DNA from: Bigelowiella natans CCMP2755
Lineage: Eukaryota; Protista; Cercozoa
DNA length: 64,000 nt
Assembly: GCA_000320545.1 (NCBI GenBank)
Contig: ADNK01001529.1
Coordinates: forward strand, 36,807 to 100,806
Direction: 5' to 3'
Shown here: positions 24,873-32,835 of the stretch, one piece after another
Numbering within the stretch: the first letter of the stretch is position 1
Layout: each line of letters opens with the position of its first letter
The notes under the pieces: generated by a model
Database searches by the model: none
Seen by the model: the letters and a program-made list of their open reading frames with translations, nothing else
Told to the model about the DNA's origin: nothing
Program-made: the position numbers and the translations under genes

Positions 24873-24976
24873 CTTGATTGTCCACTTTGGAGGCAAAAAT
24901 GGCCACGATCGACGCAAAATGCGATGCTTGAGAGCGCTGCCAAAAGCCAAAGTTGCGATTGCGCGATGCGACATGG
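24873..24976 (-). repeat. Orphan inverted copy (~104 bp) of the transposon right end
   Basis: Reverse complement of 32571-32674 with about 8 mismatches. Confidence 0.85.
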
Positions 24977-25198
24977 TGAGCATTTGCATGCACATCTTTG
25001 ATCGACAGATCTGCACGTTGTGCTCCAGTGATGCTAGTCCAGATCGAGCCACTTGCGATCAATTCCACAGGTCTAGCGAGGTGCACGTTTGTGTCAAACA
25101 CAGCTAGACAGTGATGACAGGTCCACAAAGTCGGCGCGACTTGCACGACAAATTGCAGCGGATTCAGAGCAATGTGCGTTGCGGCCATGCTAGCACAT

Positions 25199-25218
25199 CT
25201 TGGTTGTCCACTTTGGAG
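25199..25218 (+). repeat. Left terminal inverted repeat
   Basis: cttggttgtccactttggag. Confidence 0.85.
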
Positions 25219-25967
25219 ACAAGAACCACGCGCCGCGAGTTGCTGAACCCACGTGTGAAGGCTGCAAACGCGCTTCGTTGCGCAATCGCGATCACGATCG
25301 CCACACGTGCGTCGAAAGCAAATCAAAACTCCCACGCAAACGCGAGCTCAGATTGCAATGTGTGTGAATGTGAAAACCATCTCGTGAAACATGACATGAA
25401 GAATGTGCGAAGTGCAATGACAACGGCGATGTTCTCTTCACAAAGCGGAAACGTGTGCACGCCACATGCGGTCATGCCATGTGTTCCATCTGAGCAAAGT
25501 TGTGCGCATGGCGTCGAGTGCCGAGTGTGATTTGCATCATGTCAGAACAAACAGCATTTGCAGCGTTCTACACTCGACATTGCAAGGCACAAATGATGCC
25601 TTTTCATGCCAATTCAGCCGCGTCAATGATGTGTCACGAATGCACCAGTGCATTCGCAACATTCAGCCGAGAACAGCGACATGCATGCGTCTCATCAATC
25701 TCCAGACAGGCTCACAAGGTCATGAGAGAATGCCACAAAATGAACACGTCTCCATGTGTGTGACTCATCCAATCAATCACAAAAACTGCCATCATCATCA
25801 TCACTGGAAGACAACATGAAAATGTCATCTCCACTGCTGTCATCCATTCCAACATCAGTGTTGGCATGAGGGTCGGCGCACATGGGTTTCGGTGCTTTGT
25901 CCAATCTCCTTGATTTGCGTGTTGGAACCTGATGGAAAAGACAGTTGATGTGTGAAAATGAGCTGAT

Positions 25968-28441
25968 TCATGCATGCAACGTCACCGAGCTAGTGTGAGC
26001 ATCTCGTGAAGTGTGTTCTTGGAGTCTTTGCCTTCTTGTTGCGTTGTGAACAATGCGCAAATCTGCGCCAATTGATGCTGAGCTTGTTTCATCATCATTT
26101 TCATCGTGTTGCATCGCATCTTCAATTGAACTTGGTTCGTCGCTGTCATCGTGTTTGTGTTCACTCGTGTGGTCTGTGCTGGAACTGTCTGATTCATGCT
26201 CGGGGTGATGCCTAGCCATGTTGCTTCGAAACCATTCTGGGCCAGAGTGAATCAGCTCAATGATTTGTTTCTCGAAAGAAGCGATGTGATGCTTGATGCG
26301 GGTTTTGTCCATGCAATTGGATTGTTGGTTGAGTTTTGTTTTGTGCATGTCAACATTGTTTGCAGTTGAATGGCATTTGTTGCAAGTGTGTTTCACGTCA
26401 TCGTCGTGCGATGATTTGTCTTTCACAACTTGAACAAGGTGTTTGATTCGCTCCATGAACCAATTGGATGTCTTTTGCAAGTTCGGAGTGTTGTTTCTGA
26501 TTTCTGGTTGTTTCCGCTGAAGGTGTCCTTCTCCCATGGAAGTGCAAAATGTTTTGGTGCTGTTCCACATTGTTTTCATGATCTTGAAACATTCATTTGC
26601 ATGTTCAATGTCTTTGGAATGGGTGTCCCGAATCACTTTGCGACCACAAATTGACAACATGGATTCACCAGGCTCTTCATTGCCATGATTTGGACTTTTG
26701 CTGAAGTTCAACCAGAAATCAGTGGAGGCATTTCGGTGCATCTCAAGAACAATGTGGTTCATGTGTGTGTTCCTTCCATGTTGCCTGTGTCCAAAATTGG
26801 CAAAAGCTGCCATGACATTTTTGTGCAAACTGAAAAGCATTTGAAAGTCGTCGACTTTCAAAGCGATCATGCAATCATGTAGCAACGGTGTGCAAAACCG
26901 AAGCAAAGAGCACCAAGAATCCAGTTCTTCCCTCTCTGGGATGTGTTGTCGATGAACGCTGCAAGCTGGACACTTGTCAAACGATTCTTTGTTGTCAATG
27001 TTCCAGTTGGCATCCAAAATCTCGTCCATTTCACATTTTTTACCAGAGTGTGTCACTCTTAAGAGTGAAAAAAAGTGCACAATGTGCGCGATGTGCTTTG
27101 GTTTCGATTTCCATTTCTGCCCAGGGCACAGTTTTGCAAATGATGGCATGAAAATGTCTTTGTAGCTTCTCCACACGAGCATGGAAAGAAATTTGCAAGA
27201 GTGCCACCATCCTAGAACAGGCATGATCAGGTTCCTCACATCCAAAATGTGCAAACTTTTTGACCAAAATGCCTGAGCAATGACACACAAGGTTGCGAAT
27301 GTGCCAGTGTGTTCGTGACAAAGTGGAACATTGCAAATGACCTTCAAAATCCTTTCACAAATGGCTGCATCCGAAACCACCGTGATCATGCAATTTTGTG
27401 GAATGTTCTGTTTGCACAAGCTCAATGAAATCTTGAATGGTCCTTCATTTGCCGAGACGTTGTGTTCGTTCATCTCGCAAGGTTGCACATGTGATGGAGC
27501 GTCGACCCGGTTTTTCACGGCCTTGATGCATGCGTTCCTTTTCTTTTCATCTGCCACACATCTCATCACAGTGTCCACTGTCACTTTGATGGGCACATGC
27601 CTGATGTCCCATTTCAAACACAAAGCAACACCGGACAAATTGAACTCAGCTTCGTCGATGAAACGCATGAACCAATTGGATTTGTCACTGAACAATGAGG
27701 TGACATCACATTGAGGATGTCCCTTCTCAATGTGCCAACATGGTTTCTTGACAAAAGGACAGATCACACTCGGATGCTTCTTAACAGCTACTGCACACCA
27801 TTGACAGTTTTTGCACACATTGTTTCCTCTTGGCATTTGAACTGCCAACGCTTTCCCGTGATTGTCAATCCACATCAAGCTCAGTTTTGATTCTCTGATT
27901 TCTGCATCATTCTCAACACGGAGTTGTTTGCATCTCCTTGAGAATGAAGATTTTCCACCACCAATCCCAATCTTGGACAAAAGTTTTGCACCATTTAATG
28001 ATGAACCTCTGAACCGTAATGACATCAACAAGTGTTTCCACTTGGATTGCAACCGCTTGTGCTCCACACTGAGAGCCAGGAGACCCATTGAAACAAAGTG
28101 TCGAATGCACGTGTTGAGATTCTTTTGATTCAATGCACATTTCAATTGTGAACAATGAGACAAATCCCTAAATGTGTTGCATTCTGTCTTCGATGCGAAG
28201 TGGGTGCAGAAAATCTCGAACAACTCGAAGCCAAAGAAACCTGTTTGACAATTGCAATGTCGTTTGTTCATTGTGAATGTTGTGAAGCACACCTTCAGTT
28301 GGGAACAATCTCCTTCCGACTTGAAAAACATCCAAATAAATGTCATCCGATTTGGATTTCATCAAACTCTTCTCTAGTTCGACCAATCTTGTCCTGAATC
28401 CTTTCCATGTGAATCTTGACTGACGACGTTCATTCTTTCCA
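25968..28441 (-). pseudogene. DDE-type transposase (DUF6589/Academ/KDZ-like), hypermutated, probably non-functional
   Basis: 792-aa ORF with motif order WIDN...VVSD...MPVLGWWH...NEEPGE, resembling the D/D/(GxxH)/E layout of DUF6589-type transposases. It has only one Tyr and abundant Cys/His, and reads through an in-frame 69-nt intron (27273-27341). Family assignment is by motif recall, not by search. Confidence 0.6.
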
Positions 28442-31400
28442 CTGATCACAAACATGTATCATGAGTTACGAACATACCAGTACATTCGTAACACAATTTC
28501 TTGAACATTATTTTTGCATTGTGAATTAAAATAAGATGTTGAGTTGAATGTGGATCTTGAAGTTGCATGTTCAATTACATGTTACTTAAAATGACAACAA
28601 AGTGCTTTTTGTAAATTAGGTCAATGAAGAAGCTACGAGTACGAGCCGAAAAATTAATGTTTAAAAACTTTAATTTTTCGTTCGTGACGTTTTTCGTAAT
28701 TTCACCGTAATCACAAATACAAGAGGAGATCACTTGTTTGGCGCCTTGCAAGAGGGCACTCTAGAGTATCACGTGCTCCGCAGCACATTTCGGAAACATT
28801 CGATTGTGCACGCCCAACTACGCTTACTCACGAACCTCATTATGCCAAAGCAAGGATACGGCAAGCTCGACCATGAATGTGAGGGGTTCAATTTTGGGAA
28901 GTGTTCAGAACGTGAGACGGGGTTCGGGTGACAGACTTACACTTTCAATTAGAACTCGCAGCTCACATTGTTCACATCACTGACCATGCCGTGTTTGCAT
29001 CACCTTCTAGGAAAATGCACTGTTTTGGATTCTGTCTGGTGCTTCTCTCGCATGACAGATCCGAACAACCATTGGCAGCTGCACGTCCAACAGCCCGTCG
29101 AAGCAGGCAAGCGGGCCCAATGGAAAAAGTGTGACGTGCACGCGCTGAAGAACACCGAGCGCCGCCAAGTCGCGAACCAGAAAGTGCTGAATGCGCTCAC
29201 CGCGTCGGTGTTTTCCCCGGATGCTGGGAGGGAAACATTGGGTCTTGAACTTGACAAATGGGTTGAAAACAGCGCCATTGCAAGCACAAGATCCAATGAA
29301 CACGCCAAGATGTCTCAATGCAAATCAAAACAAGGCATTTGACAGCATCTTCGCTTGTTTCAAAATGGAATTCTCAAATGTTGCTGTTGTCAGATGTTGC
29401 AAAGGAATTCAAGAAACACCTGAAGAATTTGAAGAAACTCCGCCAGGAACTTGCATCTCAAGACCAACCAGAATCGGTAGTGCAATTTCATCAATTAAAA
29501 CATGGTGACGAATGTGCTGGTACATTCGTAACATTGAAATTATTCTTTGAATAGTCGTCATCATCTGTGCCAAAGACGAAGGACAAGACAACTCCGGGCA
29601 AAGATGCGCCAAGTCAATCAGACTTGAACCTCCAGGGTGATCTTCCAGAAGGAATCACCATTGAAGGTCTTTTGGTTTTTTCACTTTCGTGCGAAACAAC
29701 GTTGACTGTCTTTTGGTTCAGAGTACGAAAAAAATGTGAAGGAAGGAGATGATGCCAAAGTCAAGCTCGGAGCAGAAATGGAGGCATTTGTTGACAAGAT
29801 CTTTCTGGGGACATGCGAGCTGAAGCTGGACCAGCTTGTCGGTCCGGAACATGGGAAGACAGCTTCTCGGAAACTAAGGCAAGGGGAAGTGCGCAAGATT
29901 CGAGATTCAATGATGAGGAACCGGTCTGTTCACATTGTGCTTGGCGCACTTATTCGCCCTTCTGCGCCCGTGTACAAAGAGAAGCAAACTTCTCTCAAAC
30001 GTTCACGGGTGGAACTCAAGCAATTCGTGTCGGAGAACACACTCCAAGTTCAAGATGGCATCTGGGCGGAAGTGATCGATGGGAATCACCGCCGCGTCGC
30101 ACTGCAAGAACTACTGGCAATCCACAATTCTAAACGTTATCGCAAAGTTACTTGCAACGTTTTCTGCACAGATGACCCAGAGGACAACAAGATGATCCGC
30201 AAACATGGTCATCTTGTCAATGAAGCTGACAAAATCAGCATCAAGTCCACAGTGTGGGATGCCATCGCCGAAATGAAGACTAGCTACCTGGAAGCCAAGG
30301 CATTTGATACCAGGTTGGGTCCGACTAGGTTTACTAAAGAACACATTGGGGACTGGAAAGAGCTCACCAGCTCGCATTCCAAAGGTGGTTACGGTGCGAC
30401 CTACCTTAACTTGGTGGTTGGACTCGCACAGTGGAGCGAACACAGCTGGAACCTTTTGGAGAAATTTTACAACCCAGGACCCAACGATGTACATGACGCA
30501 CCCAAGGACTTTGAATGGATCAGCAAGGTTCGCGGAATGGACGAGAAAGATTACACGACAGAGATCAAGAAAGTCACAAGCCTCAAAGATTACACCATCA
30601 AGCAAATGATCGTCAGTCTACAAAAGAAACAATGTGAGTCATCTTTTTTGTTTGTGTCACTGTAGCCTTAGTTCTGGCGTCATCTGTGTTTCAGGGTCCA
30701 AATACCTCACAAGTCTTTTCATGAAGAAATGTGACGTGTCATCATGGGAGGCATCATACGAGAAGTTTCAAGTTCCCAAGAACGACAAGTGGCTCAGTTT
30801 CGCAATCCAGTTCCACCTTGTCAAAAACAAGATGGCTCCAGAGAAGAACAAGCGAGTCATTCCAGAGGTTGTATTGAACAGTTTCCAGAATCATGTTGAT
30901 CAATGCAAGGCAACACGTACGATGGAGGATGCAGAAAGAATTCAACTCAAGGAAGATGCGATCGAGCTCAACATCGTCACCGGAGTCGTCGTCAAGAAAC
31001 TAGGGATCGTCATGCAAAACAAGGGCAAATCAATAAGTATGTACTTTTTTTTACAGTTACGAATGTACCAGTATTTTCGTAACACTGTACTTTTTTATTA
31101 GATCACGTCTTTGTTGACACTCTTGTTGGAGCTTTCGATATCGGGCAGTCTTTCGACGACAAGCAACTCAACATCTACGTCAACAAGATCCATGCTGGCA
31201 AACAGCTGGATTTTGATCGCCATATTACTGGCGACTTCACCCTCACCATTCGGTGTCTCCCTGAAAACTCTAACTCTTTCAGTGAGCTCATCAACAAGTG
31301 TGGGTATGACGACGTCGACGTGCTCTATGCATACGAGCACGATCGACGTCCACAAAAGCCTAAGACCTCTTTCGCTCCGATGATTGACGCATACATCATC

Positions 31401-31950
31401 GCGAAGAACGGGTCTTACGCGCAAGTGGACTTTGGGAAGCGCGAAAACCTCATCGTCACTTCGAGTCCAAAGTCCATCACCGTGGACGGCAAGCTTTTCG
31501 CGGTGGATAGAAAAGGCGATGTGATGGAACATCTATGCCTTACTTTGTATGAGGAAAGATCTACTGTCCTCATTGCCCATGGTGGGCAAGGGTTCGACGC
31601 GTGTGCACTGTTGCACTTCACACGCAACTGCATTCAGTTGAACCGCCACCAGGAGATTACCAACCGCACCAAGGCCAAAGTCCACTCGATGACTACAACT
31701 AAGGATCCATCTTCTCAAAAAGCGCTGTTCGAGACCAAGTTCAATTCCATCTTGACCAAGTACAGTGCCCTTCAAAGTTTTGGAAAGCACTGGCATGACC
31801 TTGGCCGCATGGAGGGGAAGAAGCTCGCTGGTGGATCCGACGACGAAGAAACATCTCTTGTTGATATCGTCAAGAAAAGTGTCAGTGCAGCCAAAGGCAA
31901 AGGTATACAACTCATTTTGATTGTTACTTGTGTACTGGTATATTCGTAAC
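27292..31950. repeat. Five dispersed copies of a 28-bp palindrome (consensus GTTACGAATGTACCAGTACATTCGTAAC) at 27292-27319, 28465-28492, 29505-29532, 31056-31083 and 31923-31950
   Basis: Copies read directly from the sequence; each lies inside a predicted intron of the element's genes. Confidence 0.9.
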
Positions 31951-32252
31951 CCATGCATTTCTCAGGTGAGAAACGCCCTCACACTTTGCGTGCCAGAGTG
32001 TCTCCTGCGAAGAAGGCCAAGACCGCCAAGACTGTGGGCAAGTCCATGAAGCGCCGCACGTCCGATCCTCCGCAGTGTGGCTTTTGCAAGAGGCCCGTTT
32101 TGCCCAACGAGCTTGGGCGATGTGCTGAATGCGACGAGGTCGGCCACAAGGATTGCTTGGCCCACAAGAGCATCAAGTTCAAGTTGCGATTCTGTTCTGA
32201 AGACTGCAAAAACGCGTACGAACAGATTGCTCACGCGGCAGCAAAACTTTAG
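28842..32252 (+). CDS. Transposon-borne ParB/Srx-like domain + degenerate beta-class N4/N6 DNA methyltransferase fold + PHD finger protein (multi-exon; start approximate)
   Basis: EVIDGNHRRVALQEL is the ParB GxxR motif. The exon from 31101 has DHVFVDTLV (motif-IV position) and then RKGDVMEHLCLTLYEERSTVLIAHGGQGFDACALLHFTRNCIQLN (motif X/I-II layout). The last exon has CGFC...CAECDEVGHKDCL...FCSEDC. Exon junctions at ~29335-29392, 29477-29554 and 29667-29721 were checked and keep frame. Confidence 0.7.
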
Positions 32253-32654
32253 ACAAAAAAAAAAAAAAAAATTGACCCATTTCTGTGTGTCTCATCGCTT
32301 TCCTGATGAGAAAAAGCTCTGTCTATGGTCTGTTCATCCTTTTTTGGCCACCTCATTTCAATCTCAACTGCATGTATTTTTCAATGTAAATTCATTCAAC
32401 ACAACATTTACATGCACAATTTTTCTTTGATGCATTTCAAAACGCGCTTCATTTTGCAATTTGCTGACTTGCCTCCGTTTGCTCTCGCATCTGCCATGCA
32501 CATGTTTGATTCGCTGACCCATTTGCACGTGTTCATTCTCATGCTGCGCTGCGTTCGCGATTTTTCCCCGCCATGTCAGTTCGCGCAATCGCAACTTTGG
32601 CTTTTGACAGCGCTCTCAAGCATCACATTTTGCGTCGATCGTGACAATTTTTGC

Positions 32655-32674
32655 CTCCAAAGTGGACAACCAAG
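32655..32674 (-). repeat. Right terminal inverted repeat
   Basis: ctccaaagtggacaaccaag, the exact reverse complement of the left TIR. Confidence 0.85.
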
Positions 32675-32835
32675 ACATGTAGTTGCCAATTTCACAACTC
32701 CATGCCATGTGCCATTCATTTGCGCACTTTCTTTGACGACCGCACACGCTAGCACGTTTGCAACGTAGCAGGCGCCTACGAAAGCCACTGGCGCTAAAGA
32801 ATGCTTCGCGACTAGCATTGCAGCAGTAGGCGCAT

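Follow-up and report, generated by a model that had tools for sequence, protein, structure and literature searches.

A putative accessory gene with ParB-like and degenerate methyltransferase-like domains in a transposon of Bigelowiella natans

Described systems and the locus of Bigelowiella natans

The Ectocarpus transposon Sola1-1_Ec32 codes, opposite its transposase, for a protein of 1104 amino acids (aa) with ParB-like and N4C/N6A methyltransferase domains (Dinatale et al. 2025, PMC12477816). Here we analyse a comparable locus of the cercozoan Bigelowiella natans CCMP2755, contained in a window of 64,000 nucleotides (nt) (GenBank assembly GCA_000320545.1, contig ADNK01001529.1, positions 36,807 to 100,806 of the forward strand; coordinates below count from the first letter of that window). 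The locus is a two-gene element of about 7.5 kb with terminal inverted repeats (TIRs), whose similarity to other copies spans approximately 25199 to 32674, and in which a transposase reading frame lies head-to-head with a plus-strand gene, here called the cargo gene. The product of the latter fits the layout of the algal accessory proteins combining ParB and methyltransferase (MTase): it is carried by a TIR element, opposite the transposase, and its ParB-like domain precedes an MTase that is recognizable at the level of the fold only. As in Sola1-1_Ec32, the gene belongs to a TIR transposon, is read from the strand opposite to that of the transposase and places its ParB-like domain ahead of an N4/N6-type MTase, in 939 aa instead of 1104. 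However, the Ectocarpus protein is a recognized DNA methyltransferase, presumed active, whereas the window protein matches no MTase hidden Markov model (HMM) and reads DTLV at its catalytic motif; it also adds a C-terminal zinc finger, in a much smaller element (7.5 against 21.5 kb) and in a rhizarian host.

Other algae provide further cases in point. In Bostrychia and Chondrus, Plavaka transposons carry the accessory genes PAG2 (PF01555 with a SET domain) and PAG3 (ParB-like with a 2-oxoglutarate (2OG) oxygenase), and the products are proposed to bind and modify the element's own DNA at its inverted repeats (Petroll et al. 2025, bioRxiv 10.1101/2025.02.11.637652). Here again algal DNA transposons have recruited ParB-like and N6_N4-MTase modules as accessories; unlike the situation in the window, these modules belong to separate proteins, joined to SET or 2OG oxygenase domains, the transposase is of the Plavaka type and the MTase passes the PF01555 model. 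Related ParB-MTase genes are reported in green algae as well as in brown and red ones. An earlier note on this DNA had not recognized in the arrangement a described family; in the light of the Ectocarpus Sola1-1_Ec32 and Bostrychia PAG2/PAG3 precedents, the arrangement is of a described kind, because accessory genes associating ParB with N4/N6 methylases have been published for algal transposons. New here are the occurrence in a rhizarian, the fact that the catalytic motif was lost long ago, the extra zinc finger and a ParB domain of DndB-like character.

Beyond algae, fusions of the ParB-CTPase fold with N6_N4 MTases are enriched in phages (bioRxiv 10.1101/2025.10.10.680097). These phage and prophage fusions (including the ParB-Tls loci, PMC4738411) show the same order from the N- to the C-terminus and also travel on mobile elements; they differ in being prokaryotic, devoid of introns and endowed with canonical motifs, and the ParB domain of the window is nearest to another branch, DndB/DGQHR. 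Inactive MTase domains are found in METTL14 and in DIRS1 retrotransposons (PMC4738411). Together with MTA9, they resemble the present case in that constraint has maintained the permuted fold although the catalytic motif is lost, DIRS1 being moreover borne by a mobile element; METTL14 and MTA9, however, belong to the host and have a known active partner. In bdelloid rotifers, N4CMT (PDB 8s9n, at Z 5.8 in our fold comparison) also combines in a eukaryote a beta-class MTase of bacterial origin with a chromatin reader, but this host enzyme is active, bears a chromodomain and marks transposons; it lacks a ParB domain and is not a transposon gene. Transposon capture of PHD and Chromo readers is documented. 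The second open reading frames (ORFs) of PIF/Harbinger and CACTA elements share with the window the two-gene TIR layout, and we use them as a working model, without any domain homology. These ORFs specify non-catalytic DNA-binding proteins, Myb-like in PIF/Harbinger and TnpA in CACTA, which assist the transposase. A two-protein layout is likewise described for Harbinger/Nuwa (PMC12730594).

An expressed gene conserved with its transposase

The cargo gene is real, transcribed and borne by the element, and it has been conserved with the transposase over deeply diverged families. Its coding sequence (CDS) of 2820 nt, from the ATG at 29052 to the stop at 32252, specifies 939 aa with zero internal stops (Table 1). 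The splice sites were first set by reading frame and GT..AG borders, then compared with public transcript runs. Seven introns are seen in transcript contigs (runs X1, X4 and X10), at the joints 28878>29011, 29334>29394, 29476>29555, 29666>29722, 30633>30695, 31036>31102 and 31902>31966; run X20 had too few reads to inform. A single contig covers 29163-31033 over four introns, and others join exon E to exon F and exon F to exon G. The contigs derive from RNA, because the genomic copies retain the introns, and overlapping contigs link every exon, which therefore belong to one message. Introns of the window are short and bounded by GT..AG; that at 29335-29393 reads GC..AG, not GT..AG, once an ambiguity of two bases is resolved, and its joint is present in contigs of three runs.

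The earlier note had proposed one spliced, element-encoded gene extending from 28842 to 32252. The chain of transcript contigs through all exons and the element borders that enclose the gene bear out its unity, and the end at 32252 stands. The start does not: the ATG at 28842 opens an upstream ORF of 13 codons, because the joint 28878>29011 brings a TGA in frame, and the CDS begins at 29052. Searches were run exon by exon, and exons were joined only to establish reading frame, length, stops and the places of the motifs. Exon E, the linker between the ParB-like exon D and the MTase-like exon F, matched no Pfam model, and the PADLOC defence models gave no match. In Amorphochlora, a EukProt model of 711 aa unites in one product the region following ParB, exon E, exon F and the zinc finger.

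Table 1. Coordinates of the element, its two genes and the domains of the cargo protein in the window
Feature	Position	Strand	Details
Left target-site duplication	25195..25198		ACAT; right end flanked by the same 4 bases
Left TIR	25199..25222	+	CTTGGTTGTCCACTTTGGAGACAA; start of homology with other copies; 1 mismatch against the reverse complement of 32651-32674
Transposase gene, DUF6589-like (lead)	25968..28455	-	main ORF of 792 aa at 25968-28346 and 5' exon ORF reaching 28455
Non-coding first exon (5' untranslated region) of the cargo gene	28748..28878	+	transcript contigs start at 28748-28768; joint 28878>29011 GT..AG; holds the 13-codon upstream ORF
Cargo CDS, 7 coding exons	29052..32252	+	29052-29334, 29394-29476, 29555-29666, 29722-30633, 30695-31036, 31102-31902, 31966-32252
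Putative ParB/Srx-superfamily core, DndB/DGQHR type	29838..30161	+	in exon 29722-30633; IDGNHR at 30075-30092
Linker exon E	30695..31036	+	conserved, no known domain; homologous stretches in Amorphochlora and environmental contigs
Permuted beta-class amino-MTase-like fold (modelled), degenerate motifs	31104..31634	+	DTLV (motif IV position) 31116-31127; HGGQG (motif I position) 31578-31592
C4(H/C)C3 binuclear zinc finger, PHD-like	32076..32207	+	C-x2-C-x11-C-x2-C-x4-H-x2-C-x12-C-x3-C; preceded by a conserved basic SPAKK/KRR stretch
Right TIR	32651..32674	-	homology between copies stops at 32674-32676
Right target-site duplication	32675..32678		ACAT

The element itself is well delimited. Its termini are inverted repeats of 24 nt, CTTGGTTGTCCACTTTGGAG[A/G]CAA, and a 4-bp target-site duplication (TSD) flanks two copies, ACAT for that of the window and ACGG on both sides of copy L003. 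The 91-Mb eukaryotic assembly that holds the window, to which all our genome-wide searches refer, contains at least five long copies, with 85-96% identity, and exons D to G are open in at least five copies. A TSD of 4 bp is typical of Sola transposons. The element is possibly Sola1-like; the features of its transposase are DUF6589-like only. The transposase ORF had no Pfam match, and the DUF6589 HMM (PF20231) matched nothing in the whole genome; by contrast, 28 of 30 neighbours in an ESM Atlas feature search belong to DUF6589 clusters (score 0.96). The DUF6589 label, already proposed in the earlier note, is consequently retained as a lead, not as membership, because its support comes from language-model features and the Pfam HMM is silent.

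Some repeats accompany these features. An inverted copy of 104 bp of the right end of the element lies at 24873-24976, some 220 bp beyond the left TIR, and looks like the solo terminus of another insertion. The divergent promoter region of about 300 bp between the two element genes contains, at 28647-28680, an inverted repeat with arms of 16 nt, CGAAAAATTAATGTTT / AAACTTTAATTTTTCG. A palindrome of 26-28 bp (TTACGAATGTACCAGTACATTCGTAA-like) is repeated in the element, at 28466-28491, 29506-29531 and 31057-31082, and also at 25632-25661 and about 31930-31950. At three mismatches or fewer there are three matches where none is expected; of the seven introns of the cargo gene confirmed by transcripts, three contain the motif, the remaining copies being near or within the transposase gene. 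We considered it as a conserved parS-like site and rejected this candidate: the palindrome is specific to the family, and neither the Amorphochlora family nor that of C1447 has it.

Conservation of the pair extends to distant relatives. The nearest homologues of the cargo gene are those of another chlorarachniophyte, Amorphochlora amoebiformis, where a transposase homologue (30-34% identity) again stands head-to-head with the cargo gene (locus L011); a search for homologues beside transposases in other protists had been suggested in the earlier note. A second family, in contig C1447 of the same genome as the window and about 27-30% identical, has the same head-to-head layout, and ocean metagenome contigs retain the order ParB-E-F. 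Within C1447, positions 86100-92000 (L017 6100-8400 on the minus strand; L018 170-1970 on the plus strand) hold a ParB-like ORF, an MTase-like ORF, a zinc-finger remnant and the transposase homologue. Just downstream of the cargo gene of Amorphochlora, at 6541-7509 of L011, there is a gene with a weak match to a hAT dimerization domain, perhaps an element nested there or adjacent.

Domains of the cargo protein

The N-terminal domain appears nearest to the ParB/Srx type, in its DndB/DGQHR branch, judging from sub-threshold matches and an invariant EVIDGNHR. On the ParB-like exon, the bit score of Pfam DndB (PF14072) is 21.9-24.3 (E 1e-4 to 2e-5), for a cut-off of 29.1, and on the same stretch the NCBIfam DGQHR model TIGR03187 scores 15.8 bits (E 0.005-0.009; cut-off 58.85). 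EVIDGNHR is invariant in six sequences, including environmental homologues 32-41% identical, and the divergent C1447 family has ISGNHR at this position. Upstream, the stretch ELKLDQLVGPE...ASRKLR...IRDSM resembles what we take to be the ParB N-terminal signature. A profile of this exon run against PDB sequences returned only noise, and in both Amorphochlora copies examined the ParB core is absent or carries a deletion. At the other end of the protein, the zinc finger has in the window copy the C4HC3 spacing; seven cysteines are invariant, and the histidine is replaced by cysteine in three of seven homologues. Pfam PHD (PF00628) reaches 19.3 bits (E 1.2e-3) where 24 are required, and C1_1, with nearly the same score (E 2.7e-3), also stays below its cut-off. 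We take it for a PHD-like domain, a PHD/RING-like binuclear finger and not a strict PHD.

Between these domains, beyond the linker, lies exon F (31102-31902, 266 aa). It matched no Pfam model at E<=10 and no PDB sequence; word-indexed protein searches found nothing beyond the family itself, and searches by pattern and tblastn revealed no prokaryotic, viral or phage relatives. Exhaustive comparison by HMMER with 1.8 billion representatives retrieved ten proteins, and the sources that were looked up are Amorphochlora or environmental assemblies. One protein, P0002, 75% identical to exon F, comes from an NCBI record labelled as a Myxococcota metagenome-assembled genome (1229-bp contig), most likely through misbinning of algal DNA or contamination. 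A profile of the family (alignment A2) run against PDB sequences gave one match, the putative methyltransferase 3ll7 (E 0.078), covering the HGGxG...LN stretch.

A single-sequence AlphaFold model of exon F, with a predicted local distance difference test (pLDDT) of 33.6, was discarded; with alignment A2 the mean pLDDT rises to 49.8, with 60-85 over residues 1-110. In this model strands and helices succeed one another as in beta-class enzymes, the strand of motif IV (strand 4) preceding that of motif I (strand 1). When it was compared by VIA-align with 48,161 chains, the best 18 of 18 were beta-class or MT-A70 amino-MTases, headed by MboIIA (Z 9.2) and followed by MTA1, BceJIV, HpyAVI, CcrM, METTL3/14, TTHA0409, RsrI, EcoP15I Mod, PvuII and two more. 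The best 50 of 50 Foldseek matches were METTL3/14, MTA1/MTA9 or HpyAVI. Among the ten rows listed by the ESM Atlas structure search, nine were PF01555 clusters and one MT-A70, and in one cluster every member has PF01555 and 29% also have ParB_N; matches in BFVD were weak and mixed. A lead towards an exonuclease or a protein-primed polymerase, coming from the ESM feature search (0.89-0.90), was rejected on the ground that all three fold searches give MTases. Exon F is thus supported as a circularly permuted beta-class/MT-A70-like amino-MTase fold, by a model of low confidence and with no family HMM match.

Residue 1 of the model aligns with residue 205 of MTA1, whose catalytic Asp is D209 according to the title of entry 8xyx (D209A), so that D5 falls on it; the same residue 1 aligns with METTL3 391, CcrM 27, HpyAVI 25, RsrI 61 and PvuII 49. 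The DPPW of METTL3 starts at 395, and in each of these five enzymes (D/S)PP(Y/F/W) begins four residues past the start of the alignment. In the model, then, the D of HVFVDTLV (codon 31116-31118, near the start of the exon) is at the catalytic position, because the alignment starts four residues ahead of the catalytic Asp in several enzymes, and TLV takes the place of PP[YFW]. All five genome copies have DTL[VI] and HGG[QR]G. Their homologues read DTAI, DTVI, DGDA, DLHV, DLDT or DLEI at the motif IV position, with the Asp alone retained, and this Asp persists in homologues 22-38% identical, where H159, G161 and G163 of HGGxG are invariant in alignment A2. In motif I the canonical F is replaced by the H of HGGxG, and strand 2 closes, in aligned homologues, with N, T or H instead of an acidic residue. 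The C1447 family reads LDLEIG and FPGVGHG at the positions of motifs IV and I, respectively. No genome copy and no distant homologue examined restores a canonical PP[YFW] or FxGxG. As judged from these comparisons, the loss of the catalytic motif is old, because the motifs are degenerate in every copy and homologue, including the C1447 family, and the fold has been kept since.

At the level of domains, the claims of the earlier note fared unevenly. The IDGNHR motif of ParB/Srx type is where it was placed, with DndB/DGQHR-type matches under the thresholds; the permuted amino-MTase layout, with DTLV as motif IV and HGGQG as motif I, agrees with the AlphaFold model and the fold searches of exon F. 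The proposed PHD finger is retained as a zinc finger with C4HC3 spacing; its score and its variable histidine set it apart from a strict PHD. The check that it proposed, whether less-mutated copies restore DPPY or FxGxG, gave a negative answer among copies and homologues alike.

A binding factor or an enzyme?

To account for the whole of these observations, we propose that this two-gene transposon codes, beside its transposase, for a non-catalytic accessory factor of transposition made of a ParB/Srx domain, a pseudo-MTase and a zinc finger, a proposal to which we grant a little better than an even chance. Like the ParB-MTase accessory proteins reported in transposons of brown, red and green algae, the module would descend from fusions of ParB with an N4/N6-MTase carried by phages and by mobile elements of prokaryotes, with the methylase here turned into a pseudo-enzyme. 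Without catalysis, the protein would work by binding DNA and chromatin: its ParB domain would give binding of DNA dependent on nucleoside triphosphates (NTPs), the dead MTase fold a grip on DNA or dimerization, and the basic stretch with the zinc finger nuclear and chromatin tethering. The outcome would be help in the recognition of ends, in the choice of targets or in the protection of the element.

Several observations weigh against this proposal. The ParB-type HMM matches are all below their cut-offs, two libraries agreeing on the region; the PF01555 and PF05063 searches of the genome matched no element copy; the motif I half of the exon F model is below pLDDT 50, and the mean of 49.8 means low confidence overall; the leading match, with its Z of 9.2, stands just above the usual background of 7-8; and the invariant HGGxG loop could still bind S-adenosylmethionine (SAM) or a nucleotide. 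Comparison with the proteins of Ectocarpus and of red algae is at the level of their published descriptions. Among copies, dN/dS is 0.4-0.9, and their open frames are weak evidence of selection, because A:T>G:C changes cannot make stop codons. Such a bias is apparent when positions 28004-32674 are compared with copies L002, L003 and L004: A>G/T>C changes, a large number of them at TpA, make up most private differences of L002 and L004, and transcript contigs share this A>G/T>C excess. The private differences of the window copy are C>T/G>A when polarized by majority, which may reflect either recurrent TpA changes in the other copies or deamination in that of the window. Open frames in all copies, which had been considered as proof of selection, lose force from this bias; deep conservation across families, to judge from the sequences compared, is the stronger argument.

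The alternative that survives best, unlikely in our view, is that the MTase-like domain is still active or re-purposed, with a non-canonical MTase pocket or some other activity on SAM or nucleotides, and marks the element's own DNA, for self-marking or against silencing, a role put forward for the ParB-MTase accessory proteins of algae. Invariance of H159, G161 and G163, the strand-4 Asp present in all aligned homologues and the C1447 loop FPGVGHG, closer to a canonical motif I, speak in its favour, as does the view of the Ectocarpus protein as an active N4C/N6A MTase (PMC12477816); yet PP[YFW] follows the Asp in no homologue, strand 2 ends with N, T or H, and neither PF01555 nor PF05063 recognizes exon F.

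Somewhat less probable again, the protein might be a pseudo-enzyme partner in the manner of METTL14 or MTA9, pairing with a host MTase or mimicking it, and thereby steering or blocking the chromatin marking of the element. That the best Foldseek matches, the METTL3/METTL14 and MTA1/MTA9 complexes, contain catalytically dead subunits is consistent with this role, and DIRS1 supplies a precedent for inactive MTase domains of mobile elements (PMC4738411), but an exon-by-exon search of the genome found no MT-A70 or N6_N4 gene above cut-off (best E 0.066-0.135).

We hold it to be just as improbable that the MTase likeness is an artefact of a low-confidence model, exon F being another alpha/beta domain specific to the lineage, for example with a nuclease-like fold. 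The mean pLDDT, the Z values near background, the mixed BFVD matches and unrelated weak ESM leads, among them a DNA_pol_B_2 cluster (0.89), would fit such an artefact; against it, three libraries and two aligners agree on one fold class (18/18, 50/50 and 9/10), the alignments begin four residues ahead of the catalytic Asp in several unrelated enzymes, and the independent profile match to the MTase 3ll7 covers the poorly modelled motif I half.

Least probable of all in our estimate is a transposon-borne eukaryotic ParB-style system, in which the DGNHR domain would bind NTP and load on the element at parS-like sites, namely the 26-28-bp palindromes present in introns of both element genes. Reading of DNA would fall to the dead MTase fold and attachment to chromatin to the zinc finger, so that the element would control segregation, silencing or target choice without methylation.

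To return to the non-catalytic accessory factor, the present locus extends to Rhizaria the ParB-MTase accessory genes of transposons, described earlier in brown, red and green algae. For annotation, it accounts for a group of proteins labelled hypothetical, in ocean metagenomes as well as in genomes of Amorphochlora and of Bigelowiella-like algae. It also points to a lineage in which the MTase fold was long retained after loss of its catalytic motif; from this retention, it can be argued that at least part of the role of this class of proteins is binding, not methylation. The family would offer a natural dead version with which to ask whether binding to DNA or chromatin is enough, by itself, to aid transposition.

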